From IMG/VR virus record IMGVR_UViG_3300028394_002328, positions 1 to 64,000 of that record: a stretch of DNA of 64,000 nt. One strand, 5' to 3'. Below are positions 5,285 through 56,320 of the stretch, piece after piece (the first letter of the stretch is position 1; each line of letters begins with the position of its first letter). The notes beneath the pieces were generated by a model. The model was not told the origin of the DNA. It was given only the letters and a program-made list of their open reading frames with translations, and searched no databases. A program made the position numbers and the translations under genes.

Positions 5285-5311
5285 TTCTTAAAAACCCGAG
5301 GTTTTAGGTAT

Positions 5312-5319
5312 GATAAATA
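5312..5319 (+). promoter_or_regulatory. Putative late promoter (GATAAATA)
   Basis: Intergenic motif upstream of the gp6-like gene. Confidence 0.55.
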
Positions 5320-5336
5320 CTTAAAAGAGAAAACAT

Positions 5337-29799: not shown

Positions 29800-29808
29800 G
29801 GATAAAAA

Positions 29809-39085: not shown

Positions 39086-39087
39086 AA

Positions 39088-40365: not shown

Positions 40366-41327
40366 TCGCTATAGAGGCTCCCCAGCCTTACTTGGCCGTT
40401 ACTTGGCAAGTTAATAACTATTGTAACTTTAGGTGTAGTTATTGTAACCCGGGCAATTGGGGAGGCACTGACATCAATGATGGCAATCTAGACTTATACA
40501 TCAACAATCTAGATATTATCATTAATCGTTATAGAGAGATAGGTTATAAGAATTTTAAATTTTTCTTTAGTGGTGGTGAGCCCACTGCTTGGCGTAACTT
40601 TATTCCAATATGTGAATGGTTGTACAAAGAACTACCCCATGCTACATTAGCAGTCAATACTAATTTAAGTCGCCCGTTAAAATGGTGGGAGAAAAATCAT
40701 TATTTATTTGATGATGTAGTTGCTAGTTTTCATGTAGAGTTTGCTGATAAAAAACGGTATGAAGAAAATAGTATATTCTTATGCGATAAGGTAAACTATT
40801 TGGCTACTAAGATGTTACTACATGAGGAAAGATTTTGGGAAGTAGTAGAGTTTGGTAAGCATTTGAAAACTGTAATGCCAAACTACTTCTTAGAATGGAC
40901 TCCGCTATTTGATGAAATGACAGTCAATGCTGGCCCTTGGGAATACAAAGATCCTGCAAAAACTCAGTTCATTAATGATTGTACATCAGAGCATCAACAA
41001 ATCAAGCCAAAGCCTGATAAAAGATCAAACTACAATGTTAGTTATAATAGATATGATGATAATCATACAGAAGTGTGTAACAGTAATGAGGTAATTGTTG
41101 CAGGTAATAATTACTTCAGTAGTTGGCGCTGCAATGTAGGTGATGCTATCTTTATCAATCCAGTGGGCGAGATTAGTTTAGCAAGTTGTGGTATGGGTGG
41201 CAATGCGGGTCATATATTAAAGGATATTTCTCGTGTTGGACCTAAACAAATCATTTGCAAAAAAGAACATTGCCACTGTGGCACAGATATTATAATCCCT
41301 AAATTTATAAACAATGGCAATCCTTAA
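40350..41327 (+). CDS. Radical SAM enzyme with C-terminal Cys-rich (SPASM/twitch-like) domain
   Basis: N-terminal CNFRCSYC, 'FSGGEP', C-terminal 'WRCNVG...SCG...ICKKEHCHC'. Confidence 0.88.
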   Translation: MGRKLIAIEAPQPYLAVTWQVNNYCNFRCSYCNPGNWGGTDINDGNLDLYINNLDIIINRYREIGYKNFKFFFSGGEPTAWRNFIPICEWLYKELPHATLAVNTNLSRPLKWWEKNHYLFDDVVASFHVEFADKKRYEENSIFLCDKVNYLATKMLLHEERFWEVVEFGKHLKTVMPNYFLEWTPLFDEMTVNAGPWEYKDPAKTQFINDCTSEHQQIKPKPDKRSNYNVSYNRYDDNHTEVCNSNEVIVAGNNYFSSWRCNVGDAIFINPVGEISLASCGMGGNAGHILKDISRVGPKQIICKKEHCHCGTDIIIPKFINNGNP

Positions 41328-42543
41328 TAGAGACTCTTATCCTAAGATTAATACTAGTTTTGAAAAAGTAGGTACACCGCATTGGACAGCACCTGTTAAC
41401 AAGACTGTTACAGAAGGAAATGTAACTTTTCAAGTATATTACTTTGATGAAAATAAAGATTATTGGTTCATTGACATATATAACGGAAATGCATTTGAAT
41501 GTTACCCTATAGAAACTATTCTTCCTGAAGAAATATTAAGAAAAGTTTACAATAAGGAAGTAATATTATTAATTTCAAATACTCATGAAACTTATCACAG
41601 TTGTATTACTGGAATATATAGAGATTTGGTAGTTAGGGCTAATATCCCTATAGAGCAGATAATATTTCTAACCGAGTCTGCTGATATAATAGAAGAAGTA
41701 GACATTGTAAGACAAAAATATAATTTAGAACGAATCAATGTTGAATGGATAAGAACATTTGAGTTCAACGCAAAAAGTCAATTTTTACATATGTTTACTA
41801 ATCCACCGTTGACGCTAGAAAATAAACAGTATGATAAAAAGTTTTTAAGTTTTAATCGGCATATGATGACTCATGGTAGATTGCACCGCGGAGGACTTAT
41901 AGCATTGCTATGCTCAATGAATTTATTAGACAAGGGGTTTGTCAGCGCAGGGATGTTTTATGAATACCCAACTTGGAATGACATTTTAACCGAGTTAAAA
42001 AGTTACCATCGTGACAATGAAGAGTTCATTCAATTATTAACGACTAATGAACAACGAATTTTAAATATCGGTGATCTCTCTGTAGATGTAGATAGCACAA
42101 TGTTAAAAGAACGAGACAATGCTTATCTCTTACCTTCTATTTCTAAATTTTATGCGGATTCTTACTTTAGTGTAGTAACCGAAACAAACTGTTTTGCTAA
42201 AGGAATAATGCAGGGTGATATAACTCCACCTGGCAGACTCCTAAGTGAAAAAACTTTTAAAACTATTGCGGTTAAGCATCCATTTATTATAGTAGCCAAA
42301 GCCAAAACACTTGAATTGCTTAGAGAGATAGGATATAGAACATTTAGTCCATGGATAGACGAAAGTTATGACAATGAATTAAATGAATCAACTAGAATGT
42401 TGATGATAGTTAAAGAAATAAAAAGATTATGTGAACTATCTCCTAATCAATTAACTGATTTTTTAAACAATGTTAGAGAGATTTGCGAGCACAACCATCA
42501 AATATTATTGAGTAAAAATAAATGGACAACACAGCTAAATTAA
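41314..42543 (+). CDS. Putative glycosyltransferase (GT10-like C-terminal domain), copy A
   Basis: 'KKFLSFNR...HR', 'SYFSVVTET...SEKTFK...HPFI...GYRTF...DESYD' recalls the GT10 'EN...Y.TEK...P' motif. Confidence 0.55.
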   Translation: MAILNRDSYPKINTSFEKVGTPHWTAPVNKTVTEGNVTFQVYYFDENKDYWFIDIYNGNAFECYPIETILPEEILRKVYNKEVILLISNTHETYHSCITGIYRDLVVRANIPIEQIIFLTESADIIEEVDIVRQKYNLERINVEWIRTFEFNAKSQFLHMFTNPPLTLENKQYDKKFLSFNRHMMTHGRLHRGGLIALLCSMNLLDKGFVSAGMFYEYPTWNDILTELKSYHRDNEEFIQLLTTNEQRILNIGDLSVDVDSTMLKERDNAYLLPSISKFYADSYFSVVTETNCFAKGIMQGDITPPGRLLSEKTFKTIAVKHPFIIVAKAKTLELLREIGYRTFSPWIDESYDNELNESTRMLMIVKEIKRLCELSPNQLTDFLNNVREICEHNHQILLSKNKWTTQLN

Positions 42544-43172
42544 AATATGATATAATATATTTTGTAGGTGACAGTGTAACATTTGCGGTGAATCAAGGGG
42601 ATGACCTATATAGAACAGTCAATGAACAAAATAGATTTAGTACATTAATTGGTAATTATTATAATTTACCTGTTATTAATAATGCTCTTCCCGGCTGTTC
42701 AAATGAGTATATATTAAGAACCGTATATACTGATATAAGGGAGTTTCGACGTAATGGGATTAACCCATTAGTATTTTGCAGTTATACCGACATAAATAGG
42801 AAAGAATTTTTCTGTGAAGGAGTCAAAAAGCAGGTTTCAACTATTGATGATGGTAACCGAGTTTTTGATTCAGAATTTGTTAAAGAATATTTTACAAAGC
42901 ATTTCAATTGGGCGTTTGCACATCATGTGTCATGTATTCAAGTAGACGCTTGCAAAACATTATTTAAATACCTAAAAATTGATTTTATTGATGTATTTTC
43001 TAATGTAATTCTTGATTATGATTTTGTTACTTCTCGTGAGTGCTTAGGTAGTATTAATAAATTTGTTGGTCCAACTAACATGTTTAATGGTTGTGGTCAT
43101 TTAACTGTTAATGGTAACAAAGTAGTTGCTGATTGGGCTATTGCTAAATTCAATGAACTATATTTTAAATGA
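42522..43172 (+). CDS. SGNH/GDSL hydrolase-like protein
   Basis: 'FVGDSVT', 'PGCSNEYI' and C-terminal 'GHLTVNGN' blocks. Confidence 0.65.
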   Translation: MDNTAKLKYDIIYFVGDSVTFAVNQGDDLYRTVNEQNRFSTLIGNYYNLPVINNALPGCSNEYILRTVYTDIREFRRNGINPLVFCSYTDINRKEFFCEGVKKQVSTIDDGNRVFDSEFVKEYFTKHFNWAFAHHVSCIQVDACKTLFKYLKIDFIDVFSNVILDYDFVTSRECLGSINKFVGPTNMFNGCGHLTVNGNKVVADWAIAKFNELYFK

Positions 43173-43891
43173 AAACACTTTATGTATGTGGTGATAGTTT
43201 TTTAACACCCAGTGCATTATATCCCAACACGCATTTTACAGAAATTATTTCAAAAAAATTAGGGTATGATTTAAAAGTATTGGCTCATGGGGGAATGAGT
43301 AATAACGGAATATGTCTTCAAATTGAAGCAGCAATTGCTAATAATGCATCATTTGTAATAGCATCTCCTACCTATTACGATAGAACTGAAATTCCAATAA
43401 TAGACAAATTAACAAATTATAATGCTACCGATTTATTTTATTATGGTAATACTTACAGTAATTATGATAATAAAGTTGATCATTCTCTATTTTCTGACTC
43501 AATTAATTCACTATTATCTGCCGATAATAAGGAAAGGTTTAAAAAAATACCAAATATGATAGAAAAAGTTAACACATTGAAAGATTATCTAGTTAATTTA
43601 TATAATATAAATTGGAAGCAGCAACAAGATATATGGGCTTTATATGCAACATTTCATAAATTGCATATGTCTAATATACCCTATATCATGGTATTAGACA
43701 GAATGAATATCGCATCAGAATTTAATTGGTTAACTGAAAAAAATAATACTTTACCATATGGTGATATTGCACACTTAGTTAACGATGGTACTATTAAAGT
43801 AGATCCTGGGTATCATACATTTCCCGAGGATCAACTTTATATAGCAGATAAAATTTTAGAACATATTGAAAAATTTAATATATTAAATTAA
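43169..43891 (+). CDS. SGNH/GDSL hydrolase-like protein
   Basis: 'VCGDSF', 'GGMSNNGI' and C-terminal 'DPGYHT'. Confidence 0.65.
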   Translation: MKTLYVCGDSFLTPSALYPNTHFTEIISKKLGYDLKVLAHGGMSNNGICLQIEAAIANNASFVIASPTYYDRTEIPIIDKLTNYNATDLFYYGNTYSNYDNKVDHSLFSDSINSLLSADNKERFKKIPNMIEKVNTLKDYLVNLYNINWKQQQDIWALYATFHKLHMSNIPYIMVLDRMNIASEFNWLTEKNNTLPYGDIAHLVNDGTIKVDPGYHTFPEDQLYIADKILEHIEKFNILN

Positions 43892-44238
43892 CCATACTTC
43901 TTCATTTCTCTTACTGGGTCATTTAGTTTTTCTGCCATACTATTTTTTAAATCGTACCGTTTATGCATTACATCTCTGACATGCAATGCTCTACGACCCA
44001 CTTCTGCTAAATCGTATAAATGTTCAATACGGAATTTTTTAAAATCATCTTCTAAATCCCACACTTCCGCGTGTACTTCATATAATTGATCAAGTTCGTC
44101 CTTTATTAGTTCAAAATCAATGTCATGTAATTGTTCAGTGTAGAAGTCTAGTTCTTCTTTATTATTGCCTAATTTTGCAAATTTTAATTTGGCAATGCAA
44201 TAACGGTCTACTAATTCAATAACGGGAAATTTATACAT
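43888..44238 (-). CDS. Hypothetical helical protein (DUF6165/DUF4254-like)
   Basis: 'ELVDR.CI..LK...LYEVH..VWDLED...R...KN...E.K.Y' pattern; last gene of the inverted cassette. Confidence 0.55.
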   Translation of the reverse strand: MYKFPVIELVDRYCIAKLKFAKLGNNKEELDFYTEQLHDIDFELIKDELDQLYEVHAEVWDLEDDFKKFRIEHLYDLAEVGRRALHVRDVMHKRYDLKNSMAEKLNDPVREMKKYG

Positions 44239-45439
44239 TTATTATTTCTACCTTTGGAAAATATTTTAAGAAAATGTCTTGCTCAATATTACGCACTGTT
44301 TTAATTCTTTTACTAATCTCTGTAAAAAAGTTCCAAGCCAATGGCATAAACACAAGCCGATCATTTGAACTAAACTCTTTGATAGCATCAGGTCCTTTTA
44401 TAAGAATATTTGTTCCTGGCGTATACAAATTATGCTTTAATGGGTTGTCATCTATAATCAAATCTAACTTCATATCTAAGAAATTCAATAGTGTATTACC
44501 TTTTGCGGCTGCACCGTAGCCAATTATTTTATAGCCGTTAAACTTATAGGACTCTATAGTACGCTTTAACTCGTCCATATTACTTTTGACATTTTTTTCC
44601 CATATAGTATACGTTTTTATGTTTAGTAAGGCTTTCTCTGTTTTGATTTTGTCATCGATGGTCGATGAATCATCCTTAGTACTTAATATGAATAAGTAAC
44701 TGTTACCGTGTACAGGAGTTTTGATAGCGTCAATCAAGTATAGCCCTGCTCTTTTGGCTAACTCATACAGACTGTTGATATTAAAGAAATTAATATGCTC
44801 ATGGTATATAGTATCAAACTCATTATTCAGAACCATATCTGCTTGACTAGTCTGAATGAATAATAGTGTATGGTTACTCATCAACTTTTTACAAGTTTGT
44901 AAGAATTCTAGTGGGTTAGGATTATGTGCAAAAACATTTTGGGCAGTTATAGCATCAAATTCATATTTAATTTTATCTACCACATCAGGACCAAAAAAGT
45001 CACATATGACATTATGTTTTGCTGAACTAGTAGGATAGATATTTTCTGCTGGATCTACGCCAAACGTGTTAAACCCTCTAGACTTGAAAGAATCTAATTG
45101 AGTTCCGTCATTGCATCCAATATCTAATACATTGGATGTTTGTTTGTTTAGTTTTTCAATGACATAATTAGCAAACCATTCGCTATAATCTTTTAGGGTT
45201 TTGCTAGTACCGCTTACATACAAGTAGTTTTTATAGATTGTTTTTGGATCAACCGTATGAGTTAATTGAAGATGATAGCAGATTCTGCATAAATTTACTG
45301 CTAGAGGATACCGATCTTCAATCCCATCTTTAAGATTGAGATAACTGTTAGCCAATGGTTGAATACCTAGGTCAAGCGCCAATGACAAATTTTTATTACC
45401 ACACGCTAAACACGCATGATTGTATTCTATTTTACTCAT
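44231..45439 (-). CDS. SAM-dependent NDP-hexose C-methyltransferase-like protein (Zn-binding N-terminus)
   Basis: 'CLACG...LGIQPLAN...C..C..LQL', 'LDIGCNDG', 'NVFAH', 'FDTIYHEH', 'GYGAAAKGNT'. Confidence 0.88.
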   Translation of the reverse strand: MSKIEYNHACLACGNKNLSLALDLGIQPLANSYLNLKDGIEDRYPLAVNLCRICYHLQLTHTVDPKTIYKNYLYVSGTSKTLKDYSEWFANYVIEKLNKQTSNVLDIGCNDGTQLDSFKSRGFNTFGVDPAENIYPTSSAKHNVICDFFGPDVVDKIKYEFDAITAQNVFAHNPNPLEFLQTCKKLMSNHTLLFIQTSQADMVLNNEFDTIYHEHINFFNINSLYELAKRAGLYLIDAIKTPVHGNSYLFILSTKDDSSTIDDKIKTEKALLNIKTYTIWEKNVKSNMDELKRTIESYKFNGYKIIGYGAAAKGNTLLNFLDMKLDLIIDDNPLKHNLYTPGTNILIKGPDAIKEFSSNDRLVFMPLAWNFFTEISKRIKTVRNIEQDIFLKYFPKVEIINV

Positions 45440-46337
45440 ATGGTATGAACTGGTTTCTATTGCTAAAGGTTGTCTGATCTATCTTAGATACAATATCATT
45501 GACAATTGAGTCAATAGTCTCTTTAAACTGAAAGTTATAAGTATGCTTAAATTTTTGAGTGTTCATAATAAAATCATAAACGCCTGTTACGCTAGGTTGT
45601 ATTTTTATATTTGAAGTAGTTAAACTACTAACCATTAGGCTAATGTTATCAACAGTGTCATAGAAGCTAGCCAAGTTGTATATTCCAACTTTTGGATTCT
45701 GTAGTACACTATTAACTGCAAGACCAATATCAGCGATACCCAATATTGGTCTTGTTATTTCTTTATTATTAATAAAAATGGTACCCAACTCAATTGATTT
45801 TTTAGTCATTGAATTAATCATTAGGTCTTCCCGCATGTTTGGACTCCATCCATTCACTGTTCCAAATCTAAATCCAATTATATTATACCCATCTTGAATA
45901 AACTTTAGTGCATGTGTATCAAGCGTGTATTTGGTTAGATCATAGTTGTTTATGGGTTTAAATAGCAAATTACTATCTTCGCTCGTTTCTTTGGCAGAGT
46001 TACCGTACACACTTCCGCTGCTTGCATAAATCAATGTTTGTTTTTTGTCAATCATTGATACCAAATTGACAAAGTTATTAACATTGTTGTTAAAACTTGA
46101 AGTAATATCGCCGTTACACATATTCACTGAACTATGACCGGCAAGTAGAATTATGGCATCAAACTTACCTAGGAATTCTTTGGAAAGAGTATTGTAATCC
46201 TGTGTAATACTAGTACCTAGATTTCTTTCAAACCAACAAAGGTCAACACTCTGCATTTGGTATTGATATTGAAGGTCATGTATTAGTCTAGATCCTATAT
46301 ATCCATTGCCTCCCAAAATTAAGACTGTTTTAGCCAT
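45432..46337 (-). CDS. NAD-dependent epimerase/dehydratase (extended SDR)
   Basis: 'LGGNGYIG', 'YASSGSVYG', YxxxK 'YDLTK', 'RFGTVNG'. Confidence 0.88.
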   Translation of the reverse strand: MAKTVLILGGNGYIGSRLIHDLQYQYQMQSVDLCWFERNLGTSITQDYNTLSKEFLGKFDAIILLAGHSSVNMCNGDITSSFNNNVNNFVNLVSMIDKKQTLIYASSGSVYGNSAKETSEDSNLLFKPINNYDLTKYTLDTHALKFIQDGYNIIGFRFGTVNGWSPNMREDLMINSMTKKSIELGTIFINNKEITRPILGIADIGLAVNSVLQNPKVGIYNLASFYDTVDNISLMVSSLTTSNIKIQPSVTGVYDFIMNTQKFKHTYNFQFKETIDSIVNDIVSKIDQTTFSNRNQFIPYE

Positions 46338-46344
46338 TGTGATT

Positions 46345-46352
46345 TATTTATA
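46345..46352 (-). promoter_or_regulatory. Putative late promoter, perfect TATAAATA on the minus strand
   Basis: The plus strand reads TATTTATA; the motif ends 7 nt before the minus-strand ATG at 46337. Confidence 0.6.
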
Positions 46353-46368
46353 TGGTAATATAGTCTAC

Positions 46369-46376
46369 AATAAATA
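46369..46376 (+). promoter_or_regulatory. Putative late promoter (AATAAATA), divergent partner
   Basis: Ends 5 nt before ATG 46382. Confidence 0.5.
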
Positions 46377-46381
46377 ATGCA

Positions 46382-47524
46382 ATGATTGTGAATAATCTTA
46401 AATTCTATTATATAGATACTGTATCTGCCTCAGATAATGAAGTCCCTTCAATTAGGTACGCCAGTGCTTATCAATCGTTGCCGATATATTCTAACCATAA
46501 TTATTATTACATAGAATTTAAACGGTCTCTTTCTAGTTTATCTGAATGTTTGATTAAGGACAATGTATTACATCAGCTAGTACACGGTGACTTATACCTT
46601 GCGCTATGTAATAGTCATGAAGCCTTTCATTCTGTAGTTGATGAAGTATATGAACACGCTGTAATAGAATTAGCCATTCCTGAACATAAGATTATATTAA
46701 TAAGCGAATCAGCGGATATAGTCACTGAAGTTAACGATGTGGCATTACAATTGGGTAAACATCCTATTAAAACTCTTTGGGCTAGAATTTTTGAATGGGC
46801 AGGTAATAGATATATTAATTCCGTTTTAAACGGTAAAACTAATCCCAAATTAATAGACAAATCTTTTGGTAAAGCTTTTTTAAATTTTAATAGGAGATGG
46901 AGAACACACAGACCTGCTTTAGTAGCATTATTATTTGCTAATAATTTATTAGATAGGGGTTATGTAAGTTTGGCTCCGGTAGAGGGAACGAATTGGGAAC
47001 TGATTTGGTGGTCATTAGTATCGTATCATAATGAAGAGATATCTACATTGTTAACAATGTACAAAGACGATATATGCAACATACCTCCTTTATTTTTAGA
47101 CGCCGAAAATATGGAAGTCAACCGAGTTGAACATAGTGAGTCAGTAGCATATTTGTATAATGACAGTTATTTTAGCATAGTGACTGAAACAAATTATTAT
47201 GCCAATCAACCGGGACGATTCTTCAGTGAAAAAGTTTTTAAACCAGTTGTTATGGAACATCCATTTATAATAGTATCTAGGCCACATTCACTAGCAAAAT
47301 TTAAAGAATTGGGCTATAAATCATTTAGTCCATATATTGATGAATCATACGATGAAGTAGAAGATGACTCGGAAAGATTACTAGCGATAGTAAACGAAAT
47401 AAAAAGATTGTCTCTTTTATCCCCTACAGAATTGTCAGAATTTTTAATCAATGTAAAGCCTATATGCGATTATAATTTTAAAATTTTGTTAACTAAAAAA
47501 AATTTTATTACCCATTTAAATTAA
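46382..47524 (+). CDS. Putative glycosyltransferase (GT10-like C-terminal domain), copy B
   Basis: 'KAFLNFNRRWRTHR', 'SYFSIVTET...FFSEKVFKP...HPFI...DESYD'; full-length paralog of 41314..42543. Confidence 0.55.
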   Translation: MIVNNLKFYYIDTVSASDNEVPSIRYASAYQSLPIYSNHNYYYIEFKRSLSSLSECLIKDNVLHQLVHGDLYLALCNSHEAFHSVVDEVYEHAVIELAIPEHKIILISESADIVTEVNDVALQLGKHPIKTLWARIFEWAGNRYINSVLNGKTNPKLIDKSFGKAFLNFNRRWRTHRPALVALLFANNLLDRGYVSLAPVEGTNWELIWWSLVSYHNEEISTLLTMYKDDICNIPPLFLDAENMEVNRVEHSESVAYLYNDSYFSIVTETNYYANQPGRFFSEKVFKPVVMEHPFIIVSRPHSLAKFKELGYKSFSPYIDESYDEVEDDSERLLAIVNEIKRLSLLSPTELSEFLINVKPICDYNFKILLTKKNFITHLN

Positions 47525-47526
47525 CT

Positions 47527-48336
47527 ATGACAGATTTATCTAACATTGATTTTGGTAAATATAAACGCTTCTTTGCGTTTGGATGCAGTTTTACTTCATA
47601 TCATTGGCCTACTTGGGCTGATGTATTAGCATCTGAAATGCCTAATGCTGAATTTTACAATTTTGGACATTGCGGTGGTGGTAATTCAATGATATCTAAT
47701 CGCATTGCTGAAGCAAATTGTAGATATAAATTTACCGATACTGATTTAGTTGTGCCGATGTGGACTACATTTTGTAGAGAAGATAGGTATAGAACTGGTC
47801 AATGGATGAGTACTGGTAATATGTTTAGCCAAAATGAATTTGATGAAGAATTTGTGAGAAAATATTGCGACCCAATTGGATATTTGTTAAGAGATTTAGC
47901 AATAATTACTGTTACAAGTACCTATCTTAAATCCTTGCCTTCTGATTCATTCATGTTAAATGGAGTACCTTATACTTATCAAATGGATATTGAAACCGCA
48001 CCATATCCAAAATTAAAAGAAATTTTGGAATTATATAAAGACACTATTAGCTTAACTCCACCTGCATTAGTTGATTTAGAATTAGGAGGTGAATTTAAAC
48101 ACGGTCATGAATACTCAAGGACGCATAATGGTGATTGGTACTTAGACTATCATCCAAACACATTGCATTATAATGGATACCTTAAAAAAATAGGTCTACC
48201 GTTAACATCTAAATCTTCAATGTATACAGAACATTCAATGACATTGTTAAAATCAACTAAAACAGAAGCACAATTGATCATCGCCTTTAATAAAATGGTT
48301 GACGATAGAAATACAAAATTAAAAAATCTTTTTTGA
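47527..48336 (+). CDS. SGNH/GDSL hydrolase-like protein
   Basis: 'FGCSFT', 'GGGNSMI' and 'DYHP' blocks. Confidence 0.6.
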   Translation: MTDLSNIDFGKYKRFFAFGCSFTSYHWPTWADVLASEMPNAEFYNFGHCGGGNSMISNRIAEANCRYKFTDTDLVVPMWTTFCREDRYRTGQWMSTGNMFSQNEFDEEFVRKYCDPIGYLLRDLAIITVTSTYLKSLPSDSFMLNGVPYTYQMDIETAPYPKLKEILELYKDTISLTPPALVDLELGGEFKHGHEYSRTHNGDWYLDYHPNTLHYNGYLKKIGLPLTSKSSMYTEHSMTLLKSTKTEAQLIIAFNKMVDDRNTKLKNLF

Positions 48337-48350
48337 ACTTAGGAATATTA

Positions 48351-50705
48351 ATGAAAAAAGTAACAATGATTGGAGTAGGCAAATTAGGACAAGACTGTGC
48401 TGAGGTAATGGCAGACGCGGGCTATGATGTAATCGGTTATGATATAGAACCTAGGTCACCTAAGTTTCCTATGATGAATACTATTAAAGAAGCAGTCATT
48501 GACCGTGATATTATTTTTATTGCTGCACCAACACCACATGATCCTATATACGGCGGTGAAACTCCTACTAGTCATTTACCTAATAAAGACTTTAATTATA
48601 ATATAGTAATCAATATACTCAATGAGGTAAACATATTCGTTAATAAAAAGCAACTAGTTGTACTTATAAGCACCGTGTTACCCGGGACAGTTCGTAATCA
48701 TTTAGAACCTTGTATTACTAACGCTAGATTCATTTACAACCCATACTTGATTGCAATGGGCACGGTCAAATGGGACATGGTAAACCCTGAAATGATTATC
48801 ATTGGAACAGAAGATGGTAGTATTACAGGTGATGCACAAGAGTTGATTGATTTTTATAATGTGTTTATGAATAATAATCCTAGGTACGAAGTAGGTACTT
48901 GGGATGAAGCAGAATCAATAAAGATTTTTTATAATACTTTTATTAGTACTAAGTTAGCACTAGTGAATATGGTTCAAGACGTAGCCGAAACAAACGGCAA
49001 CATTAATGTAGACATTGTTACCAAAGCATTAGCAAATAGTACACAGCGTATTATGGGCCCTGCATATATGCAAGCTGGCTTAGGAGATGCAGGAGCGTGT
49101 CATCCTAGAGATAATATTGCATTAAGGTATTTAGCCGATAGATTAGACTTGGGCTATGATCTGTTTGATTGCATAATGACCGCTAGAGAAGTACAAGCAG
49201 AGCGTATGGCACTCAGATGTTTAAAGAATGGTAAGAACGTCACTATTATCGGTAAAGCATATAAACCTAAAGTACCTTACACAAATGGTAGCGCTAGCAT
49301 GTTGGTCGGTTATTATATTGAAAAACATGGAGGCTATATTAATTATTACGATGAAAATACAGGTGATTTAGATTTAAAAACAGAATGGACTGAAGTATAT
49401 TTAATTGGATATTGGGAAGATTGGGTGCATCATGCATTAAATAATATTCCATGTGATTATAGGTCAGTAGTTATAATTGATCCATGGAGGAAGATTTCTG
49501 ACCATAATGCATCTTATAAGTTTGAAACTATCGAATACGGTAATACTAGACCAAAAAATATATATGGTGTAGAAAACTCTCAATATCTAATTTATCAAAC
49601 CGGTCATTTAAAGAATTTGTTTGGGTTATGGCCTGAAATGGAAAAACATAAAGATATTATTCATCTCATTGATGCTGAATCAGGTCCAACAAAATTTCAT
49701 TTGAGACCCACGGAATTGATTGTAGAAGAAATATTAGAGGCTTCTAAGAATGGAAAAATTAAATTTTTATTTAATAATTTAGCTGAAGGATATCAAATTC
49801 CAGCAGTAGACAAAATTCACCGCATTGCAAATATATTAGAAAATCAAATTGATTCCAAGAATCTTATATATTTGACATCTTCGCCCGGAGTAGAACAAAT
49901 ATATGAAGATTTGTTTTCCAGTAAAAAGAATAAAAATTGGAAAAATAAAATTTCAATATTGTCTGCCCATGCTTTTCATTTATATACTCAGTGGAGTATG
50001 TTAGAGCTTAAAGAGTTAACTAATTATATAATTAAAGAAAAATCTAAAGATTTTTTATGTTTCAACAAAGTTCCTCGTGAGCATCGAATCAGACTACTTA
50101 ATAGAGTGCTAGAGCATAATATGCTAGATAAAGGTTATTATTCGTTTGAAGGGTTACCAAATTGGTTAGAATTCTTACCATACGAATTTACTAGTATTAA
50201 ATTAAATAAACATAAATTTCCAATAAAATTAAATATAACCCCTGAAAGACCAAATCCGTTAATGGTAGAAGTTCAGGATCTTAAATATTTTGATGATAGT
50301 TATTTTAGTATAGTTACCGAAACAACTTTTTATAATAATGACCATCCGCGTATTGTTAGATATGGGACCTTAGATAATATTTTTATTACTGAAAAGACTT
50401 TTAAATGTTTTCCTGCAATGCACCCGTTCATTGTATTTGCTTATCCTAATTTATTATCTGAATTAAGAAAACTTGGGTATAAAACGTTTGCACCCTTTAT
50501 AGATGAATCATATGATACTATTATCAATGATGATGATAGATTTGAAGCAATATGGAAAGAAATAACTAGATTATTACATAAAACACCTGAAGAATGGATT
50601 CAATGGCAATCTGGCATCAAAGAAATCGTTGAATTTAATAAAAATCATTTTTATTCAAATACAAATTATTCTTCTACCCCTATTGACGATATTTTTGGAG
50701 ACTAA
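48351..50705 (+). CDS. UDP-glucose/GDP-mannose dehydrogenase family protein fused to a GT10-like domain
   Basis: 'IGVGKLG', 'STVLPGT', 'AESIKIFYNTF', 'GACHPRD', 'GKAYKP'; C-terminal 'SYFSIVTET...TEKTFK...HPFI...DESYD'. ATG 48351 preferred over TTG 48333. Confidence 0.85.
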   Translation: MKKVTMIGVGKLGQDCAEVMADAGYDVIGYDIEPRSPKFPMMNTIKEAVIDRDIIFIAAPTPHDPIYGGETPTSHLPNKDFNYNIVINILNEVNIFVNKKQLVVLISTVLPGTVRNHLEPCITNARFIYNPYLIAMGTVKWDMVNPEMIIIGTEDGSITGDAQELIDFYNVFMNNNPRYEVGTWDEAESIKIFYNTFISTKLALVNMVQDVAETNGNINVDIVTKALANSTQRIMGPAYMQAGLGDAGACHPRDNIALRYLADRLDLGYDLFDCIMTAREVQAERMALRCLKNGKNVTIIGKAYKPKVPYTNGSASMLVGYYIEKHGGYINYYDENTGDLDLKTEWTEVYLIGYWEDWVHHALNNIPCDYRSVVIIDPWRKISDHNASYKFETIEYGNTRPKNIYGVENSQYLIYQTGHLKNLFGLWPEMEKHKDIIHLIDAESGPTKFHLRPTELIVEEILEASKNGKIKFLFNNLAEGYQIPAVDKIHRIANILENQIDSKNLIYLTSSPGVEQIYEDLFSSKKNKNWKNKISILSAHAFHLYTQWSMLELKELTNYIIKEKSKDFLCFNKVPREHRIRLLNRVLEHNMLDKGYYSFEGLPNWLEFLPYEFTSIKLNKHKFPIKLNITPERPNPLMVEVQDLKYFDDSYFSIVTETTFYNNDHPRIVRYGTLDNIFITEKTFKCFPAMHPFIVFAYPNLLSELRKLGYKTFAPFIDESYDTIINDDDRFEAIWKEITRLLHKTPEEWIQWQSGIKEIVEFNKNHFYSNTNYSSTPIDDIFGD

Positions 50706-50708
50706 TAA

Positions 50709-52958
50709 TTGGATTTTAACCTAACGTCATTAGCAGTAGATAAGTTAGTTCCTAAAGAACGGCCTACAGAAGATATTGCCGATGCCCGACATCGTAATAT
50801 GATGGAGGCTATAGCGCCCTATGCAAAGAAAACAGAACAAAAAAATCTAACACCTGTATATGTTAATTATAAAACCCGCAATACTAAATTAGTATTGGTA
50901 TTATGTCCTGAATGGAGTCCGTATATGCCGCCCTTTAGTCTAGCTAGACTAAGTGGTATAGCAAAAAGTGCAGGATATGAAACTACTATTATGGATTTGA
51001 ATGTTAGAGCCTATAACGAATATCGTAACGATTGGCAACCTAATAAAAAACTCCCATTCAGACTATGGGATCCTAGTAGCAGTTGGCACTGGCTAGGCGA
51101 GACTTATATGAATGATATTCATCCCGTATTAGAGCCTGTACTTAGTAAAGCAATAGATGATATAGTTGAACTAAATCCTGAAGTAGTTGGCTTTAGTATA
51201 TATTATATTAGTGAAGAGCCAACTAAGTGGATGTGTAAAGAACTCAAACGTAGACTGCCCAATGTAAAAATTGCAGTAGGTGGACCCAACGTACACAAGA
51301 GTTGGTTTAAAGTAGAACCATATTATGATTATGCAGTTGTGGGTGAAGGTGAGGCAAACTTATTAGTATTACTTGAAGAAGTAGAAAACGGTATCAACCA
51401 CAGTGAACCTAAGATTCTAGATCAACCCGAAGAGCAGCGTATCAACATAAATGGCTTGCCTATGCCAGACTATGAGTCTATAGATTTTAGTCAATATGAA
51501 TTGCCTAACGGAGTAAACACAGAAATTAGTAGGGGCTGTACAGCAAAATGTACTTTTTGCGAAGAGACACATTTTTGGCGATATCGTCAGCGTCAATCTG
51601 TTGATTTGATTACGGAAATCGAATGGCTATACTATAATAAGGGTACAGATGTTGTTTGGTTCATTGATAGTTTAGTCAATGGCAACTTAAAAGAGTTGAG
51701 GGCTTTTGTCAAAGGAGTCGCCGCTAAAGGTCTTAAGATTAAGTGGACAGGATATGCCCGCTGTGACGGCCGAATGGATCTAGAATACATGAAAGATTTA
51801 GCTGCCGGTGGTTGTATCATGTTTAACTATGGGATAGAATCCGGTAGTCAAAAAGTATTGGACGATATGGCTAAAGGCGTCACGATTGCAGAGATGGAAC
51901 AAAACTTCATCGATGGTAAAAAGGTGGGTATATGGGCTGCTACAAACTGGATTGTAGGATTCCCCACTGAAAATTTTCAAGACTATGCCGATAGCATGAC
52001 ACTACTATGGCGTATGCGTAATAATAATATTAATAACGCCGGCTTGGGAGTAGGTTATGGCTTGGGCCCTGAAACTATAGTAGGTCAAAATCCGCATAAA
52101 TTTAATATTAGTTGGCACAAGTATCAAGGACATTGGATTACAAAAGACTTGACAATGGGCGGTACTCATGTCATGACTAGAGTAAAAACGTTTCATATGT
52201 TTGCCGATTTTATACAGGGGTGTAGTGAAGTTCCAATTGGTTATCCAGTGAGACACAGTTTAGCAAGAGAACATTATAAAATAGAATTGAATGATCCTAA
52301 GTGTATCAAAGAAATTGAATATGAAAAATTTGATTATAATATTATTAAAGTAGATATTAATCCATTTGCTAATACATTAGTAAATGAAATGTGGCCATTC
52401 TTTCGAATGCTTTGGAAAACTAGAGGTGGATATAAAGCTGTAGTGAAATTTCATCCTGACATTGATTTAAAAGAGTTTGGCAGTCAGTTTGGACCCGGCA
52501 TGTATTATGCTACTTATAAGTTTGATATCACGGATGACGGCAAGTGGGATGCCGATTTTGATATTATTTTTAATCAAGTAGATAATATATTTGACGATAG
52601 AGAACGTCCGCCTCTAGGTAGAAAAGGTCCTTTTTACGCACAAGACTATAGTAGAATTCAAGCTAATACAGCCAAACGTGCCCGTAAATTAGCAAAGCCA
52701 ACATGGAGCGATGAAGAAGGTAGAGATGGACAAGATTTTACAGACTTGTTAAATGAAGAACAAATGTTAAATGAAACTATTGATTTCTCATTTAAGCTAC
52801 ATTGGGTTGAGTCAGGTGATTGGGGCAACTATGCCGACTATGAAGTTAAAGTTTCTGATACTACTACCGTTGTGATTCCTGAAAAGAAAGCAATGTCGGC
52901 TACAGAATTTGCTACAATTGACGTAACATCTATTAAAAAACGTGAACCCAATACTTGA
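50709..52958 (+). CDS. B12-binding-domain radical SAM enzyme (class B methyltransferase-like)
   Basis: 'PPFSLARL...VVGFS...IAVGGP...VVGEGE' cobalamin-binding domain; 'RGCTAKCTFC'; 'GIESGSQKVL..M.KG'; 'IVGFPTE'. Confidence 0.9.
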   Translation: MDFNLTSLAVDKLVPKERPTEDIADARHRNMMEAIAPYAKKTEQKNLTPVYVNYKTRNTKLVLVLCPEWSPYMPPFSLARLSGIAKSAGYETTIMDLNVRAYNEYRNDWQPNKKLPFRLWDPSSSWHWLGETYMNDIHPVLEPVLSKAIDDIVELNPEVVGFSIYYISEEPTKWMCKELKRRLPNVKIAVGGPNVHKSWFKVEPYYDYAVVGEGEANLLVLLEEVENGINHSEPKILDQPEEQRININGLPMPDYESIDFSQYELPNGVNTEISRGCTAKCTFCEETHFWRYRQRQSVDLITEIEWLYYNKGTDVVWFIDSLVNGNLKELRAFVKGVAAKGLKIKWTGYARCDGRMDLEYMKDLAAGGCIMFNYGIESGSQKVLDDMAKGVTIAEMEQNFIDGKKVGIWAATNWIVGFPTENFQDYADSMTLLWRMRNNNINNAGLGVGYGLGPETIVGQNPHKFNISWHKYQGHWITKDLTMGGTHVMTRVKTFHMFADFIQGCSEVPIGYPVRHSLAREHYKIELNDPKCIKEIEYEKFDYNIIKVDINPFANTLVNEMWPFFRMLWKTRGGYKAVVKFHPDIDLKEFGSQFGPGMYYATYKFDITDDGKWDADFDIIFNQVDNIFDDRERPPLGRKGPFYAQDYSRIQANTAKRARKLAKPTWSDEEGRDGQDFTDLLNEEQMLNETIDFSFKLHWVESGDWGNYADYEVKVSDTTTVVIPEKKAMSATEFATIDVTSIKKREPNT

Positions 52959-53526
52959 GTTTGAAACGGTTATAAAAGAATATTATAACAGCCCATATGC
53001 GGTTACAACTGATTGTTGTACCCACGCTATTGAACTATGTATTAGGTTATTAAAGCCAACTGAGGTATCATGTCCAAAACACACCTACCTAAGTGTTCCA
53101 ATGACATTTGAAAAATTAAATCTAGATTGGAGATTTAAAAATTTTAAATGGAATGATTATTATTATATAACTAATAATATTATTGATGCGGCAGTATATT
53201 GGAAGCCCGATGGATATATCCCTAATACATATATGTGCTTGTCATTTCAATTTAAAAAGCATTTAAATGTGGGTAGAGGTGGCATGATATTAACCGACGA
53301 TTATGAATCTTATAAAAAATTAAAAAAGATGAGTTATGATGGTAGGCTTCCCGATATTGCATGGGCTGAACAAGACGTAGACACATTGGGTTATCATTAT
53401 TATATGACACCTGAAACTGCTGAGTTGGGTTTAGATAGATTTCACGAAGTAAAGGACATTGAACCTAGACAATGGTCTTGGAAAGACTATCCCGACTTAA
53501 CAACAATGAGTGTATTCAAATGCTAA
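52942..53526 (+). CDS. DegT/DnrJ/EryC1/StrS-like PLP aminotransferase (short form)
   Basis: 'DCCTHAI', 'IIDAA', 'SFQFKKHL..GRGGMILTDD', 'GYHYYM'. Confidence 0.8.
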   Translation: MNPILEFETVIKEYYNSPYAVTTDCCTHAIELCIRLLKPTEVSCPKHTYLSVPMTFEKLNLDWRFKNFKWNDYYYITNNIIDAAVYWKPDGYIPNTYMCLSFQFKKHLNVGRGGMILTDDYESYKKLKKMSYDGRLPDIAWAEQDVDTLGYHYYMTPETAELGLDRFHEVKDIEPRQWSWKDYPDLTTMSVFKC

Positions 53527-54482
53527 GTAAAAACGAGTGGGATCCACTTAAAACCGTGATTGTTGGTATAGCAGATAATGCTACTAGACCAATTATATCT
53601 ACAAGCGTTAGGACTGTTAACTATGCTGATGTAAAAGATGTGAGTACGATTGAATGTGGTCCATATCCTGTACAAGTCATAGAAGAAGCGAATCAGGATT
53701 TAGAAACACTATGTGATTTTCTTAAGAAAGAAAACATTAAGGTATTACGCCCTGAAGCAAATCATCCTAGGTATTATAACTATTGCCCAAGAGATACGGT
53801 ATTAATACATGATGAATTAGTATTGGCTACACCAACTGCACTAAGTGAACGACGCCATGAATGGACTAGTTCTGCGAAGCATTTAAATATAGTTACAGTA
53901 GCACCTATACCAAATGATGATATAATTTATAATACTGAATGTATAGGTAATCCTGATATTTTAGCATTAAATGAAATAGATCCTTGTTTTGATGCTGCTA
54001 ATATTATTAGAGCAAATGAAGACCTTTATTATCTAGTTAGTAATACTGGTAATAAAAAAGGTGCAGAATACTTAAGGTCATTGGGCAAAACTGTACATAC
54101 TATTGAAAACGTATATAGTTATATTCATATTGATAGTACTATTGCATTTTTGCGTGAGGGTTTAATGTTGTTAAACCCAAAAAGAATTACGAATGTCAAA
54201 GAACAATTACCCAAATCATTGCATAATTGGGATATAATATGGGCTACTGAGCCAATAGATATTGGACATTACCCCGGTATATGCAATGCTAGTGTTTGGA
54301 TAAATGTAAATTTGTTATCTATCAATCCTAACTTAGTAGTTCTAGAAGAACACCAACACAATTTACGAATAGAATTAGAAAAATACGGTATTGAATCAGC
54401 AATGTTACCAATGCGTCATGCTAGAACATTAGGTGGTTGTTTTCACTGTGTGACATTAGATTTAGTTAGAGATGATAAATGA
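53520..54482 (+). CDS. Amidinotransferase (glycine/inosamine-phosphate amidinotransferase family)
   Basis: 'NEWDPLKTVIVG', 'CPRD', 'FDAAN', 'HIDST', 'GGCFHCVTLD' with Asp/His/Cys catalytic residues. Start 53520 preferred over 53472. Confidence 0.9.
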   Translation: MLSKNEWDPLKTVIVGIADNATRPIISTSVRTVNYADVKDVSTIECGPYPVQVIEEANQDLETLCDFLKKENIKVLRPEANHPRYYNYCPRDTVLIHDELVLATPTALSERRHEWTSSAKHLNIVTVAPIPNDDIIYNTECIGNPDILALNEIDPCFDAANIIRANEDLYYLVSNTGNKKGAEYLRSLGKTVHTIENVYSYIHIDSTIAFLREGLMLLNPKRITNVKEQLPKSLHNWDIIWATEPIDIGHYPGICNASVWINVNLLSINPNLVVLEEHQHNLRIELEKYGIESAMLPMRHARTLGGCFHCVTLDLVRDDK

Positions 54483-56200
54483 GTAAATGGCGTCGAGGAC
54501 ATGTTGGTAGATTTTGGTATACTGAAGAGGTTAAAAATCTTACATATATTAAACAACCGATAACTCAAGATGAAGTTGACCAATGGGTATCTAAAGGTTA
54601 TGATTACGTAAAGAGCTTTACGGGCAGCATGTATGATAATAAAAACCCAATGCCTGAATTTATTAATAGACTTAAAGATATCTTTTACAACTATAAAAAT
54701 CTTACGTTTACTTTTTATAAAATGAGTACATTGGAAATTATGCCTGAGCATTCTGATCACTATAATACATATATGAAATTATATGGGGCAGATTACAAAA
54801 ATGTACACCGCATCTTATTAATGTTAGAAGATTGGAAACCCGGACATTATTTAGAAATAGATGGCACTGGTATTATTAATTGGGTAGCAGGTGATTACTT
54901 TATTTGGGAAAATGATTGCAAACATGCTGCTGCTAATATAGGTGTAGAAGATAGATATACTTTACAGATTACGGCTGAAATACTTAGCGACAACTCAACT
55001 GACTATAAACTACATTGGTATAATATTCCTGATAGAGAATCAAAAACCGAATCATCTCAATACTATATGAATAGGGTACTAAACGGAGTAACTGATAATA
55101 TAAGAAATGAACCATTGTATATTTACATGCTTAATCAACAAATTGTTGAACTAGAAACAATAATACATGATCAAAGTACAGTACAGTATTTAAATGAAAA
55201 GGGTATTACATTTTATCTAACAGAACCATTATGCGGCTATACAAGATTACCTAGGAAACATACACTATCAATTTATTCAGAATTTAAAGGTGATGAAGAT
55301 TCTTCTGCTTTACGGGCAGACGAGTTAGATAGCATTAAAGAATATGTTATCAGAAATAAATTAACTAATGTTAATGTTTATACATGTGATTATGACGCTA
55401 AAACATATTATCCTTACTATAAATCTTTTATGAATATAGAAACAGATGATTTGTTTATTAGAACCATACCACAAAAAACAGTATTCCATACCAATGTCAA
55501 AGCTGCTTTTAATAAAAAATTTATTTGTTTAAATTGGAGATTTACTCCTCATAGGCAATTATTAGCCGCATACTTGTCTCAAAAATCTAGCACTATTAGT
55601 TGGTATTTTAGGGGAGATTTGCCTGTTGTAGGGCACTATAATTGGATTAGTATTTTTTCACTTAGAGACCCTAAATATTTTAATACTTTAATAGATGGCA
55701 TCACATATCTAAATGCTAACGCACCTCTGAGTGTTGACTTACCTGATGTAGAATCTATCTCTTTATATGATACTGCTCATGGCGAATTTATTCCTAATAG
55801 TCAAATACTGAATAATAGTTCCAATGAGATAATAGAAAATGCTTATTTGAATGTGTTTTGTGATATAGTTACTGAGTCTAGATTCGCTCAGCCAACTGGT
55901 AACTTTAGCGAAAAGGTATTTCACCCTATATGGTATAAAAAGCCTTTCGTATTGGCAGCGCCTCCTCATACACTAAAATATTTAAAAGAAGAAGGGTATA
56001 AAACCTTCAATGAATTTTGGGATGAAAGTTATGATGACTGTGAAAATCATGAAGAAAGATTAATGAAAATATTTGATGTAATAGATTTCATTGATAGTAA
56101 ATCTATAGACGAATTGCGTGAAATGTATGAGCAAATGAAGCCAATACTAAAACATAATTATGATTTAATAAAGCAAAAACTGCCCACAGTAGAAAAGTAA
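54479..56200 (+). CDS. 2OG-Fe(II)/cupin-type oxygenase-like domain fused to a GT10-like domain
   Basis: HxD...H motif ('MPEHSD...KHAAANIG..DRYTLQIT'); C-terminal 'DIVTES...FSEKVFHP...KPFV...DESYD'. Confidence 0.7.
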   Translation: MSKWRRGHVGRFWYTEEVKNLTYIKQPITQDEVDQWVSKGYDYVKSFTGSMYDNKNPMPEFINRLKDIFYNYKNLTFTFYKMSTLEIMPEHSDHYNTYMKLYGADYKNVHRILLMLEDWKPGHYLEIDGTGIINWVAGDYFIWENDCKHAAANIGVEDRYTLQITAEILSDNSTDYKLHWYNIPDRESKTESSQYYMNRVLNGVTDNIRNEPLYIYMLNQQIVELETIIHDQSTVQYLNEKGITFYLTEPLCGYTRLPRKHTLSIYSEFKGDEDSSALRADELDSIKEYVIRNKLTNVNVYTCDYDAKTYYPYYKSFMNIETDDLFIRTIPQKTVFHTNVKAAFNKKFICLNWRFTPHRQLLAAYLSQKSSTISWYFRGDLPVVGHYNWISIFSLRDPKYFNTLIDGITYLNANAPLSVDLPDVESISLYDTAHGEFIPNSQILNNSSNEIIENAYLNVFCDIVTESRFAQPTGNFSEKVFHPIWYKKPFVLAAPPHTLKYLKEEGYKTFNEFWDESYDDCENHEERLMKIFDVIDFIDSKSIDELREMYEQMKPILKHNYDLIKQKLPTVEK

Positions 56201-56221: not shown

Positions 56222-56320
56222 ATGTTTATATTTAAATGGATTAAGAATATTATCCGAGAATACAAATACCGTAAAAGAATTAAAGAATTACGCAAACGGG
56301 ATCCTTTCATATACAAATGA
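56222..56320 (+). CDS. Small basic peptide (32 aa) coupled to the carbamoyltransferase
   Basis: Translated by hand: MFIFKWIKNIIREYKYRKRIKELRKRDPFIYK*. AAGGAG RBS at 56209-56214; ATGA overlap with 56317. Confidence 0.75.
   Translation: MFIFKWIKNIIREYKYRKRIKELRKRDPFIYK

Follow-up and report, generated by a model that had tools for sequence, protein, structure and literature searches.

A recurrent viral domain family with a predicted GT-B fold in the sugar-tailoring gene module of a large freshwater phage

The DNA analyzed in this work (the window) comprises the first 64 kb of the IMG/VR virus record IMGVR_UViG_3300028394_002328, a genome of 335,035 bp judged to be 95% complete. We have focused on a domain without annotation that appears there in four copies, two of them making up proteins on their own (paralogues A and B) and the other two placed at the C-terminal side of a sugar dehydrogenase (paralogue C) and of an oxygenase (paralogue D). 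We consider it probable that this domain is the catalytic unit of an unannotated, almost exclusively viral family of glycosyltransferases (GTs) with a GT-B fold, working within a conserved and soluble sugar-tailoring module.

The four open reading frames (ORFs), at 41314, 46382, 48333/48351, and 54479, translate without stops, with no need of another genetic code, and carry the motifs K.F[LI]..N..HR, [IV]VTE[TS], [ST]EK.F, and GY.[TS]F...DESYD in the same order, as the sequence-only reading of the window had described. Each of these long motifs is found in 4 of the 481 ORFs of the genome (six-frame translation, at least 80 amino acids, aa), exactly the window copies, and in none of the other 477, while the alignment of the four copies has 31 invariant columns that cover every motif named in that reading. 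Chance cannot account for this homology, since in a translated genome search the 380-aa paralogue B matched paralogue A with an E value of 2.6e-69 (42% identity between both), paralogue C with 3.5e-26, and paralogue D with 6.8e-21. The number of four stands for the window and falls short for the complete genome, in which a fifth, divergent paralogue is located just outside the window. This one does not have several of the family motifs (e.g., K.F...N and the arginine equivalent to R332). A sixth copy was not found in the 335-kb genome with the broader family profile.

The structure of paralogue B was modeled with AlphaFold2 on 40 relatives, with a predicted local distance difference test (pLDDT) of 92.8 and a predicted template modeling score (pTM) of 0.90. 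Strands and helices alternate in two halves, and the model displays the features that define the GT-B superfamily, i.e., two facing Rossmann-like domains and a C-terminal helix crossing back. Foldseek searches against the PDB retrieved only GT-B glycosyltransferases, at probabilities of 0.90–1.00 (glycogen synthase, trehalose-6-phosphate synthase, and SdgB). The template modeling scores were low (0.3–0.43), as expected from a different hinge angle between the two domains. In the exhaustive structure search with VIA-align, in which differences of about one Z unit or less count as a tie, the first matches were the T4 beta-glucosyltransferase (BGT, Z 11.0), the T4 alpha-glucosyltransferase (AGT, 10.1), and a Rickettsia GT (9.9), followed by human FUT9 (9.6), GtfB (9.5), a chlorovirus GT (3oy2, 9.5), the GT of phage HY126 (9.4), EXTL3 (9.4), POGLUT2 (9.4), and Helicobacter pylori FucT (9.2). 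All the listed matches to the whole model (Z 7.4–11.0, residues 1–378) are GT-B fold proteins, nearly all of them glycosyltransferases. By this model the domain is predicted to have a GT-B fold, the outcome anticipated when such a comparison was proposed from the sequence.

At least 90% of 233 family sequences retain one residue of the N-terminal half, E80, together with R177, E269, E283, K284, P294, G311, Y323, D324, R332, and N365 of the C-terminal half (positions as in paralogue B). Equivalents of E80, R177, E269, E283, and K284 are present in all five paralogues, for instance E92, R192, E290, E312, and K313 in paralogue A and E83, R173, E263, E278, and K279 in the fifth one. In the model, the second Rossmann domain has R177 just past its first strand, and the helix opened by E283–K284 comes immediately behind the strand closed by E269. 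Such C-terminal positions usually contact the diphosphate and the sugar in GT-B enzymes, whose inverting members typically employ as general base a single acidic residue located in the acceptor domain. By analogy, E80 is likely the general base and R177, E269, and E283–K284 are likely the donor-site set; we infer a transferase that would act by an inverting mechanism.

Paralogue C combines a dehydrogenase (about aa 7–370 of the frame that opens with TTG at 48333) with the GT-B domain (aa 414–780, about nucleotides, nt, 49572–50672; family profile E 8e-83). The TTG start gives a protein of 790 aa and the ATG at 48351 one of 784 aa; the latter is probably the true start, given that the alignment with the orthologues begins at residue 7 of the TTG frame. 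The N-terminal half matches PF03721 (UDPG_MGDP_dh_N) with 55.0 bits (cut-off 27) and PF00984 (central domain) with 55.7 bits (cut-off 25.4), as well as phrog_9148 (E 3.5e-94), and the central domain has a cysteine within a G-x-C-x-P-[KR]-D-type stretch. Both domains and the catalytic cysteine that characterize the UDP-glucose/GDP-mannose dehydrogenase family are therefore present, and the name of sugar dehydrogenase given to it before is well founded. Full-length orthologues were found at 62% identity (1039 aa, with an extra C-terminal methyltransferase domain) and at 57% (761 aa), together with an unfused orthologue of 503 aa. In one freshwater run the population variant has one base inserted behind 50342 and another deleted at 50348, a compensated frameshift that alters two codons within the GT-B half.

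In paralogue D a dioxygenase (aa 1–170, nt 54479–54988) precedes the GT-B domain (aa 179–566, about nt 55013–56176; family profile E 1.6e-58). The first 170 residues, modeled on 32 sequences (pLDDT 86), retrieved with Foldseek only Fe(II)/2-oxoglutarate (2OG) dioxygenases, with a probability of 1.0 to AsqJ, AndA, and P4H. The VIA-align matches were PiuC (Z 12.9), the Dictyostelium Skp1 prolyl hydroxylase PhyA (12.1), the Pseudomonas putida P4H (11.4), the collagen prolyl hydroxylase of chlorovirus PBCV-1 (11.0), AspH (10.4), the Mimivirus L230 lysyl hydroxylase (9.7), and LH3 (9.3), with AlkB, SnoK, PolD, EvdO2, AviO1, and HygX in the same range. The closest resemblance is to protein prolyl hydroxylases, tied with other 2OG oxygenases. 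The triad H91-x-D93...H149 is invariant in the 32 sequences, of which at least 90% also keep R159. The Pfam model Asp_Arg_Hydrox remains below its threshold (17.5 bits, cut-off 22.6), although the double-stranded beta-helix and the H-x-D/E...H triad of the Fe(II)/2OG dioxygenases are both there, and the designation of this half as an oxygenase is confirmed on those grounds. Full-length orthologues from three loci are 39–49% identical, and unfused orthologues have 411–447 aa.

Both fusions are genuine. An independent IMG/VR assembly of 200,570 bp, coming from another sample, contains them at 99.2 and 99.7% identity, and Logan contigs from four runs belonging to four studies, none of them flagged as a likely source, cross both junctions (about nt 49440–49700 and 54990), which rules out misassembly. 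More than 120 protein clusters of 573–605 aa cover 98–100% of the paralogue D fusion. The domain is also fused to other partners in other viral contigs, such as a B12-binding radical S-adenosylmethionine (SAM) enzyme or a dehydrogenase plus a class I methyltransferase (Table 1), and a fusion with an NAD epimerase/dehydratase forms a 705-aa cluster of 90 members. All of these partners are enzymes that produce or alter nucleotide sugars or the acceptors of such sugars. Tandem fusions of the domain with itself (GT-GT) were seen too. With fusions that are real and widely recurrent, and with unfused orthologues of them available, the Rosetta-stone argument made earlier for a transferase coupled to donor or acceptor modification holds.

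The distribution of the family is almost purely viral. A scan of IMG/VR yielded at least 468 viral contigs with relatives, and in 79 viral loci 195 ORFs match the family profile, with 2–7 copies per 20 kb; the family ORFs of the viral loci still make up 101 groups at <38% identity. In prokaryote genomes (about 185,000 species) there were 39 stretches, mostly in contigs of metagenome-assembled genomes and with only two isolates (Caulobacter and Methylobacterium), and the 50,697 records of GenBank phages gave no tblastn match to the 380-aa copy or to a C-terminal domain. We also considered whether the longer Caulobacter-type relatives were FlmG-like flagellin glycosyltransferases bearing tetratricopeptide repeats (TPR), and rejected it, as they have no TPR or other Pfam domain. 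One of the bacterial loci contains GT2, GT4, and GT61 enzymes, three epimerases, a PhyH oxygenase, and a C-methyltransferase with the same three domains as the one encoded in the window; in another one a pyruvyl transferase, a GT2, and a GT41 adjoin a type I secretion/RTX locus; and a further one includes an aminotransferase, an acetyltransferase, and FkbM-type methyltransferases.

By sequence criteria the domain stands as a separate family. No model of Pfam, NCBIfam, or PHROGs covers it in the window copies, no glycosyltransferase Pfam model matches 57 mutually diverse members at E ≤ 1, and sequence searches of the PDB with the four-copy and the 57-member profiles gave only noise and no GT10 chain. 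A word-index protein search with the 380-aa copy found 308 relatives, 0 of them named and 0 with a Pfam domain. No paper describing the family was found in the literature; as far as can be told, a study of moraphage jumbo phages (PMC12619734) and one of DNA glycosyltransferases (bioRxiv 10.1101/2023.12.21.572611) deal with other enzymes of this class. Since no family model covers the domain, the earlier suggestion of a possible new GT-B family is reasonable. The same reading had called the domain GT10-like, and this could not be established. The GT10 model PF00852 (gathering score of 23.9 bits) is blank in the whole genome at E ≤ 10 and in the 57 diverse members at E ≤ 1, and GT10 chains score Z 8.6–9.6 in the structure search, tied with or below unrelated GT-B enzymes. 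Profile comparisons with hhalign took as reference ten genuine PF00852 members encoded in bacterial genomes. A narrow profile of 40 sequences gave a sole alignment of 34–42 columns around the donor motif (E about 0.1), and the profile of 233 sequences (number of effective sequences, Neff, 6.6) aligned over 48 columns with P 0.0062 and a probability of 6%. The family stretch S-I-V-T-E-T...f-i-T-E-K-x-x-K-P...P-F-I is placed on F-x-x-x-F-E-N...Y-i-T-E-K-i-f-D...V-P-i-Y of GT10, and the family motif [IV]-V-[TS]-E-T-N-x(8-16)-[ST]-E-K looks like the GT10 signature F-x-[LV]-x-F-E-N-S-x(3-5)-Y-x-T-E-K, in a match that is not significant. As controls, the family against GT4 and GT9 gave P 0.42 and 0.09, GT10 against either of them 0.6–0.7, and GT4 against GT9 2e-11; the global mode was uninformative for the family versus GT10. 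The two nearest Pfam-bearing clusters of the ESM Atlas are GT10, with a score of 0.78 that by the tool's own scale is often due to chance.

Two other readings of the domain itself have to be weighed here. The copies could be highly diverged true members of CAZy family GT10, i.e., alpha-1,3/4-fucosyltransferases using GDP-fucose or a related GDP-sugar. Three separate hhalign runs place E-T-N...(S/T)-E-K on E-N-S...Y-x-T-E-K, the best of them with a P value better than those of both controls, and GT10 structures are found among the best matches and show the lowest root-mean-square deviation (rmsd), namely FUT9 (4.2 Å), H. pylori FucT, and the plant FUT11 (Z 9.0) and FUT13 (Z 8.6). The likeness extends to a GT-B fold at an rmsd of about 4.2 Å, a strand ending in E-(N/T)-(S/N) with a helix starting in (S/T)-E-K some 5–10 residues on, one conserved arginine opening the C-terminal domain, and no DxD metal motif. 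However, an hhalign probability this low, an Atlas score within the chance range, the blank PF00852 searches, and the failure of broad profiles to retrieve any GT10 chain from the PDB speak against membership, and both T4 enzymes outscore GT10 structurally. The module contains no recognizable gene of a GDP-fucose pathway, and the phage family differs from GT10 in an invariant DESYD...R...N tail of its own, in the N-S-H-E motif of its N-terminal domain, and in its fusions with domains of the dehydrogenase, oxygenase, radical SAM, and methyltransferase types; to our knowledge, fusions of that sort have not been described for GT10. We regard true GT10 membership as unlikely and take GT10 as the best candidate for a distant relative, a lead in which the donor motif looks analogous. 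The other reading is a GT-B fold put to a different use, either a non-sugar transfer (TagF-like phosphotransfer, pyruvyl or ketal transfer) or a non-catalytic binding module. It is well established that this fold class includes proteins other than glycosyltransferases, but all five paralogues, like more than 90% of the 233 relatives, retain the complete set of charged residues of active-site type, which argues against a non-catalytic role, and with structural matches that are nearly all glycosyltransferases and fusion partners that make or modify nucleotide sugars we see hardly any chance for it.

The glycosyltransferase genes are embedded in a module that extends from about 31.1 to 57.8 kb of the window (Table 1). 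When the neighbors of the family were clustered in 81 loci, the recurrent companions were a twitch-domain radical SAM protein (50), a 269-aa protein (39), a 317-aa protein (31), an epimerase (29), a second radical SAM protein (21), a carbamoyltransferase (18), a 266-aa protein (18), and an amidinotransferase (15). Five of the six tandem radical SAM genes of the window are N-terminal twitch/SPASM paralogues and the sixth codes for a 325-aa radical SAM protein. The NCBIfam model of the five paralogues, NF033640 (N_Twi_rSAM, E 3e-108 and 1e-93), describes a family without an assigned reaction, which is the commonest companion of the GT-B genes. The 749-aa B12-binding radical SAM enzyme has radical SAM C- and P-methyltransferases as its nearest NCBIfam models and is most likely a methyltransferase, and a gene with the architecture of the C-methyltransferase is also found near a bacterial relative of the family. 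The 269-aa protein, placed between GT-B genes in its 39 loci, has no Pfam or PHROG match, and its nearest clusters in the ESM Atlas are viral (some with DUF6071, which it weakly resembles); it may be another unrecognized enzyme of the pathway. A 216-aa protein at 42522–43172 is weakly DUF6071-like as well. The 194-aa aminotransferase-like ORF is not a broken gene, as the short form is conserved in nine loci, and it overlaps the amidinotransferase gene. The product of the latter shares 56% identity with the protein named 'inosamine amidinotransferase' in Synechococcus phage S-SCSM2R, and Campylobacter phages also have it. The two 265-aa proteins and the 316-aa protein contain D-x-D-like stretches (L-L-D-A-D, L-E-S-D, and I-D-G-D-N), recur in related loci (18 for the former, 31 for the latter), and have no Pfam or PDB sequence match; they may be GT-A-type transferases. 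Throughout the 39 kb between 27.9 and 66.7 kb, no transmembrane segment was predicted in any real gene. The cultured cyanophage S-SCSM2R possesses a comparable cluster, with GT-A enzymes, that shares with the module the genes for the amidinotransferase, the short aminotransferase-like protein, and a radical SAM enzyme; its authors suggested, without experiments, cell-wall synthesis or modification, DNA protection, or antibiotic synthesis (PMC12801897).

Upstream of the module there are fibre-like proteins (28573–30762), and the giant protein located directly downstream has at least 14 tandem repeats of about 66–70 aa, with the core FDFSW.P..PYIY, rich in proline, followed by F-G-x-Q-W. Neither Pfam nor PDB sequences match it, and proteins with similar repeats appear directly 3' of GT-B genes, on the same strand, in nine other viral loci (e.g., L007, L042, and L061). 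Farther upstream, PHROG matches to baseplate hub and wedge proteins were found at 1084–8708, and the 6344-aa ORF that follows the wedge gene is presumably a giant fibre or a baseplate-attached structural protein. The wedge protein is 31–33% identical to its counterparts in Rak2, K64-1, Atu_ph07, and related jumbo myoviruses, by which we identify the source as a distant Rak2-like freshwater jumbo phage. The window has a G+C content of about 33% and nearly all its genes are on the + strand. Freshwater metagenomes contain the studied stretch in at least 16 runs, which come from as many as 17 studies.

Table 1. Location of the members of the domain family and of the genes around them. Positions are those of the window unless the complete genome or another viral contig is indicated; GT-B refers to the predicted fold.
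Feature	Position	Strand	Evidence or remark
Paralogue A, stand-alone GT-B-fold domain protein, 409 aa	41314–42543	+	Family profile over full length, E 1.8e-141
Paralogue B, stand-alone GT-B-fold domain protein, 380 aa	46382–47524	+	Structure modeled on this copy
Paralogue C, nucleotide-sugar dehydrogenase + GT-B domain, 784 aa (ATG)	48351–50705	+	
Paralogue D, Fe(II)/2-oxoglutarate dioxygenase + GT-B domain, 573 aa	54479–56200	+	
Fifth paralogue, divergent, 383 aa	Genome 65510–66661 (just outside the window)		E 1e-6 (380-aa query), 4e-32 (broader family profile)
B12-binding + radical SAM + GT-B fusion, 974 aa	L050:6939–9860 (other viral contig)		
Dehydrogenase + GT-B + class I methyltransferase fusion, 1039 aa	L055:8405–11521 (other viral contig)		
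Giant ORF, 6344 aa, single ORF	8717–27751		Directly after baseplate wedge gene; two sub-threshold Pfam matches only (FG-GAP_2, E1_FCCH)
Two adjacent paralogous 265-aa proteins	31113–32707		D-x-D-like stretches
316-aa protein	33023–33973		D-x-D-like stretch
Six tandem radical SAM genes	33967–41327	+	Pfam Radical_SAM + SPASM
C-methyltransferase (zinc-binding, methyltransferase, and C-terminal domains)	44231–45439	-	Methyltransf_13, _23, and _14 above cut-off
NAD-dependent sugar epimerase/dehydratase	45432–46337	-	Pfam Epimerase, E 8.6e-20
269-aa protein	47527–48336	+	Commonest non-radical-SAM companion of GT-B genes
B12-binding radical SAM enzyme, 749 aa	50709–52958	+	Pfam B12-binding + Radical_SAM
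Short DegT/PseC-like aminotransferase-related protein, 194 aa	52942–53526	+	Pfam DegT_DnrJ_EryC1, E 2e-15
Amidinotransferase-like protein, 336 aa	53472–54482	+	phrog_25854, E 1.9e-33
NodU/CmcH-type carbamoyltransferase	56317–57798	+	Carbam_trans_N E 7e-35, Carbam_trans_C E 1e-46
Giant repeat protein, 2298 aa	57810 to genome 64703	+	Directly downstream of the module

The module is best pictured as a cytoplasmic assembly line for a glycan, to which each paralogue would add one tailored sugar. In paralogue C the dehydrogenase would most likely make its own uronic-acid donor (e.g., UDP-glucuronic acid), to be transferred by the GT-B half, whereas paralogue D would most likely hydroxylate the acceptor and then glycosylate the new hydroxyl, by analogy with the human collagen enzyme LH3 (PLOD3) and with Mimivirus L230. 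These two proteins likewise join a 2OG dioxygenase and a glycosyltransferase in one chain, but in the reverse order, with the oxygenase N-terminal only in paralogue D. The transferase half of LH3 and L230 is GT-A, in contrast to the GT-B of paralogue D. The Skp1 pathway offers another parallel, being cytoplasmic and having a prolyl hydroxylase, PhyA, that acts before the glycosyltransferases and that is itself among the matches of the oxygenase half. Our leading guess, a tentative one, is that the acceptor is a phage protein, for example the giant repeat protein downstream or the fibres upstream, and what leads us to favor it is the combination of repeat and fibre-like proteins at the flanks with a prolyl-hydroxylase-like oxygenase fused to a transferase. 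A more specific version, which we find rather unlikely, is a phage-encoded cytoplasmic protein glycosylation in which the oxygenase–GT-B fusion hydroxylates prolines of the repeats (or another residue) and the five GT-B proteins build a tailored glycan on them. Such a glycan would bear uronic-acid, amino/amidino, carbamoyl, and C-methyl groups, some of them installed by radical SAM enzymes. Chlorovirus PBCV-1 capsids, Mimivirus fibrils, and mycobacteriophage capsids and tails are similarly glycosylated by cytoplasmic transferases and nucleotide-sugar tailoring enzymes of the virus itself, and a PBCV glycosyltransferase (3oy2) is one of the structural matches of the domain. Those systems use another transferase family, however, and we know of no counterpart of the radical SAM battery in them.

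Instead of a product of the phage, the enzymes might act during infection on glycans of the host envelope (lipopolysaccharide O-antigen, capsule, or surface-layer glycan). We hold this to be possible, if on the unlikely side. It is the usual interpretation of similar cyanophage clusters, and the bacterial relatives are found in surface-polysaccharide clusters beside GT2, GT4, GT61, a pyruvyl transferase, and a type I secretion/RTX locus, but the 39-kb stretch has no flippase, polymerase, ABC (ATP-binding cassette) exporter, priming phosphoglycosyltransferase, or any membrane protein, and the module has baseplate/fibre genes on one side and, on the other, a giant repeat protein that recurs with it. 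Rak2-like jumbo phages are, moreover, usually regarded as lytic, so that seroconversion of the host would be without obvious benefit. A lipid-linked envelope glycan is a possible acceptor, though the module has no membrane machinery. The comparable cluster of S-SCSM2R was read by its authors as one of cell-wall synthesis and modification (PMC12801897). The same authors labeled three homologous genes as 'antibiotic synthesis genes' (PMC12801897), in line with another explanation, namely that the module makes a free tailored oligosaccharide or an aminoglycoside-like small molecule and that the GT-B proteins are natural-product glycosyltransferases. An amidinotransferase, a carbamoyltransferase, a B12 radical SAM methylase, a C-methyltransferase, and an aminotransferase-like protein do form a tailoring set of the aminoglycoside/noviose/orthosomycin type, and the oxygenase fold also matches EvdO2, AviO1, HygX, and KanJ. 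Against this, we recognized no enzyme forming an aglycone or cyclitol, no exporter, and no self-resistance gene, and tailoring of this kind is frequent in the surface glycans of bacteria; we find a small-molecule product quite improbable.

DNA is another conceivable acceptor, in which case the enzymes would glycosylate hypermodified (hydroxymethyl-pyrimidine) phage DNA like the T4 alpha- and beta-glucosyltransferases or the metavirome GT-B enzymes of Pyle et al. The two T4 enzymes (GT63 and GT72) are the best structural matches, are phage-encoded, and are compact GT-B proteins of similar size, and the assembly of di- and tri-saccharides on 5-hydroxymethylcytosine by GT-B enzymes of phages has been documented (bioRxiv 10.1101/2023.12.21.572611). 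Their identity to the domain is nonetheless only 8–9%, and their Z values are tied with those of many GT-B enzymes that do not act on DNA. The phage shows no hydroxymethyl-pyrimidine pathway: its sole gene of the thymidylate-synthase family (genome 72486–73376) passes the equivalog cut-offs for an ordinary thymidylate synthase, a search of the genome made without a positive control did not find a Tet_JBP oxygenase, and no enzyme forming hydroxymethyl-pyrimidines, as would accompany a DNA glucosyltransferase, was found; a DNA acceptor is therefore unlikely. The conserved neighbors in the 81 loci include no cytosine methyltransferase, 5mYOX, or hydroxymethylase, the bacterial relatives of the family are in polysaccharide clusters, and five transferases with some fifteen tailoring enzymes are far beyond the needs of known DNA sugar modifications. 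Taken together, we assign DNA glycosylation a very low probability.

Several observations weigh against the interpretation that we prefer, i.e., a viral family of GT-B glycosyltransferases that may act on a phage protein. There is no significant link at the sequence level to any characterized glycosyltransferase (best hhalign P 0.006), a shared GT-B fold is by itself no proof of transferase activity, and the roles given to E80, R177, and E283–K284 rest on domain position and analogy. The dehydrogenase half of paralogue C scores 130.6 bits with the NCBIfam nucleotide-sugar dehydrogenase model TIGR03026, below its cut-off of 189.8, which makes the substrate of this enzyme uncertain. The oxygenase fold of paralogue D also resembles the small-molecule and oligosaccharide-antibiotic oxygenases SnoK, EvdO2, AviO1, and HygX (Z 9.5–11), and the location of the bacterial relatives in surface-polysaccharide clusters favors a glycan or lipid acceptor.

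Phage glycosylation beyond the simple glucosylation of DNA and the seroconversion by prophages has barely been explored. The recurrent fusions of the domain to dehydrogenase, 2OG oxygenase, B12 radical SAM, methyltransferase, and epimerase partners suggest specific substrates. If the oxygenase and the transferases did act together on the repeat protein, this would be a bacteriophage counterpart of hydroxyproline/hydroxylysine O-glycosylation, with a glycosyltransferase family of its own. A single characterized member would found a new CAZy family and give a function to hundreds of 'hypothetical proteins' of aquatic viromes, and it could reveal the nature and the acceptor of the complex glycan made by large freshwater phages.

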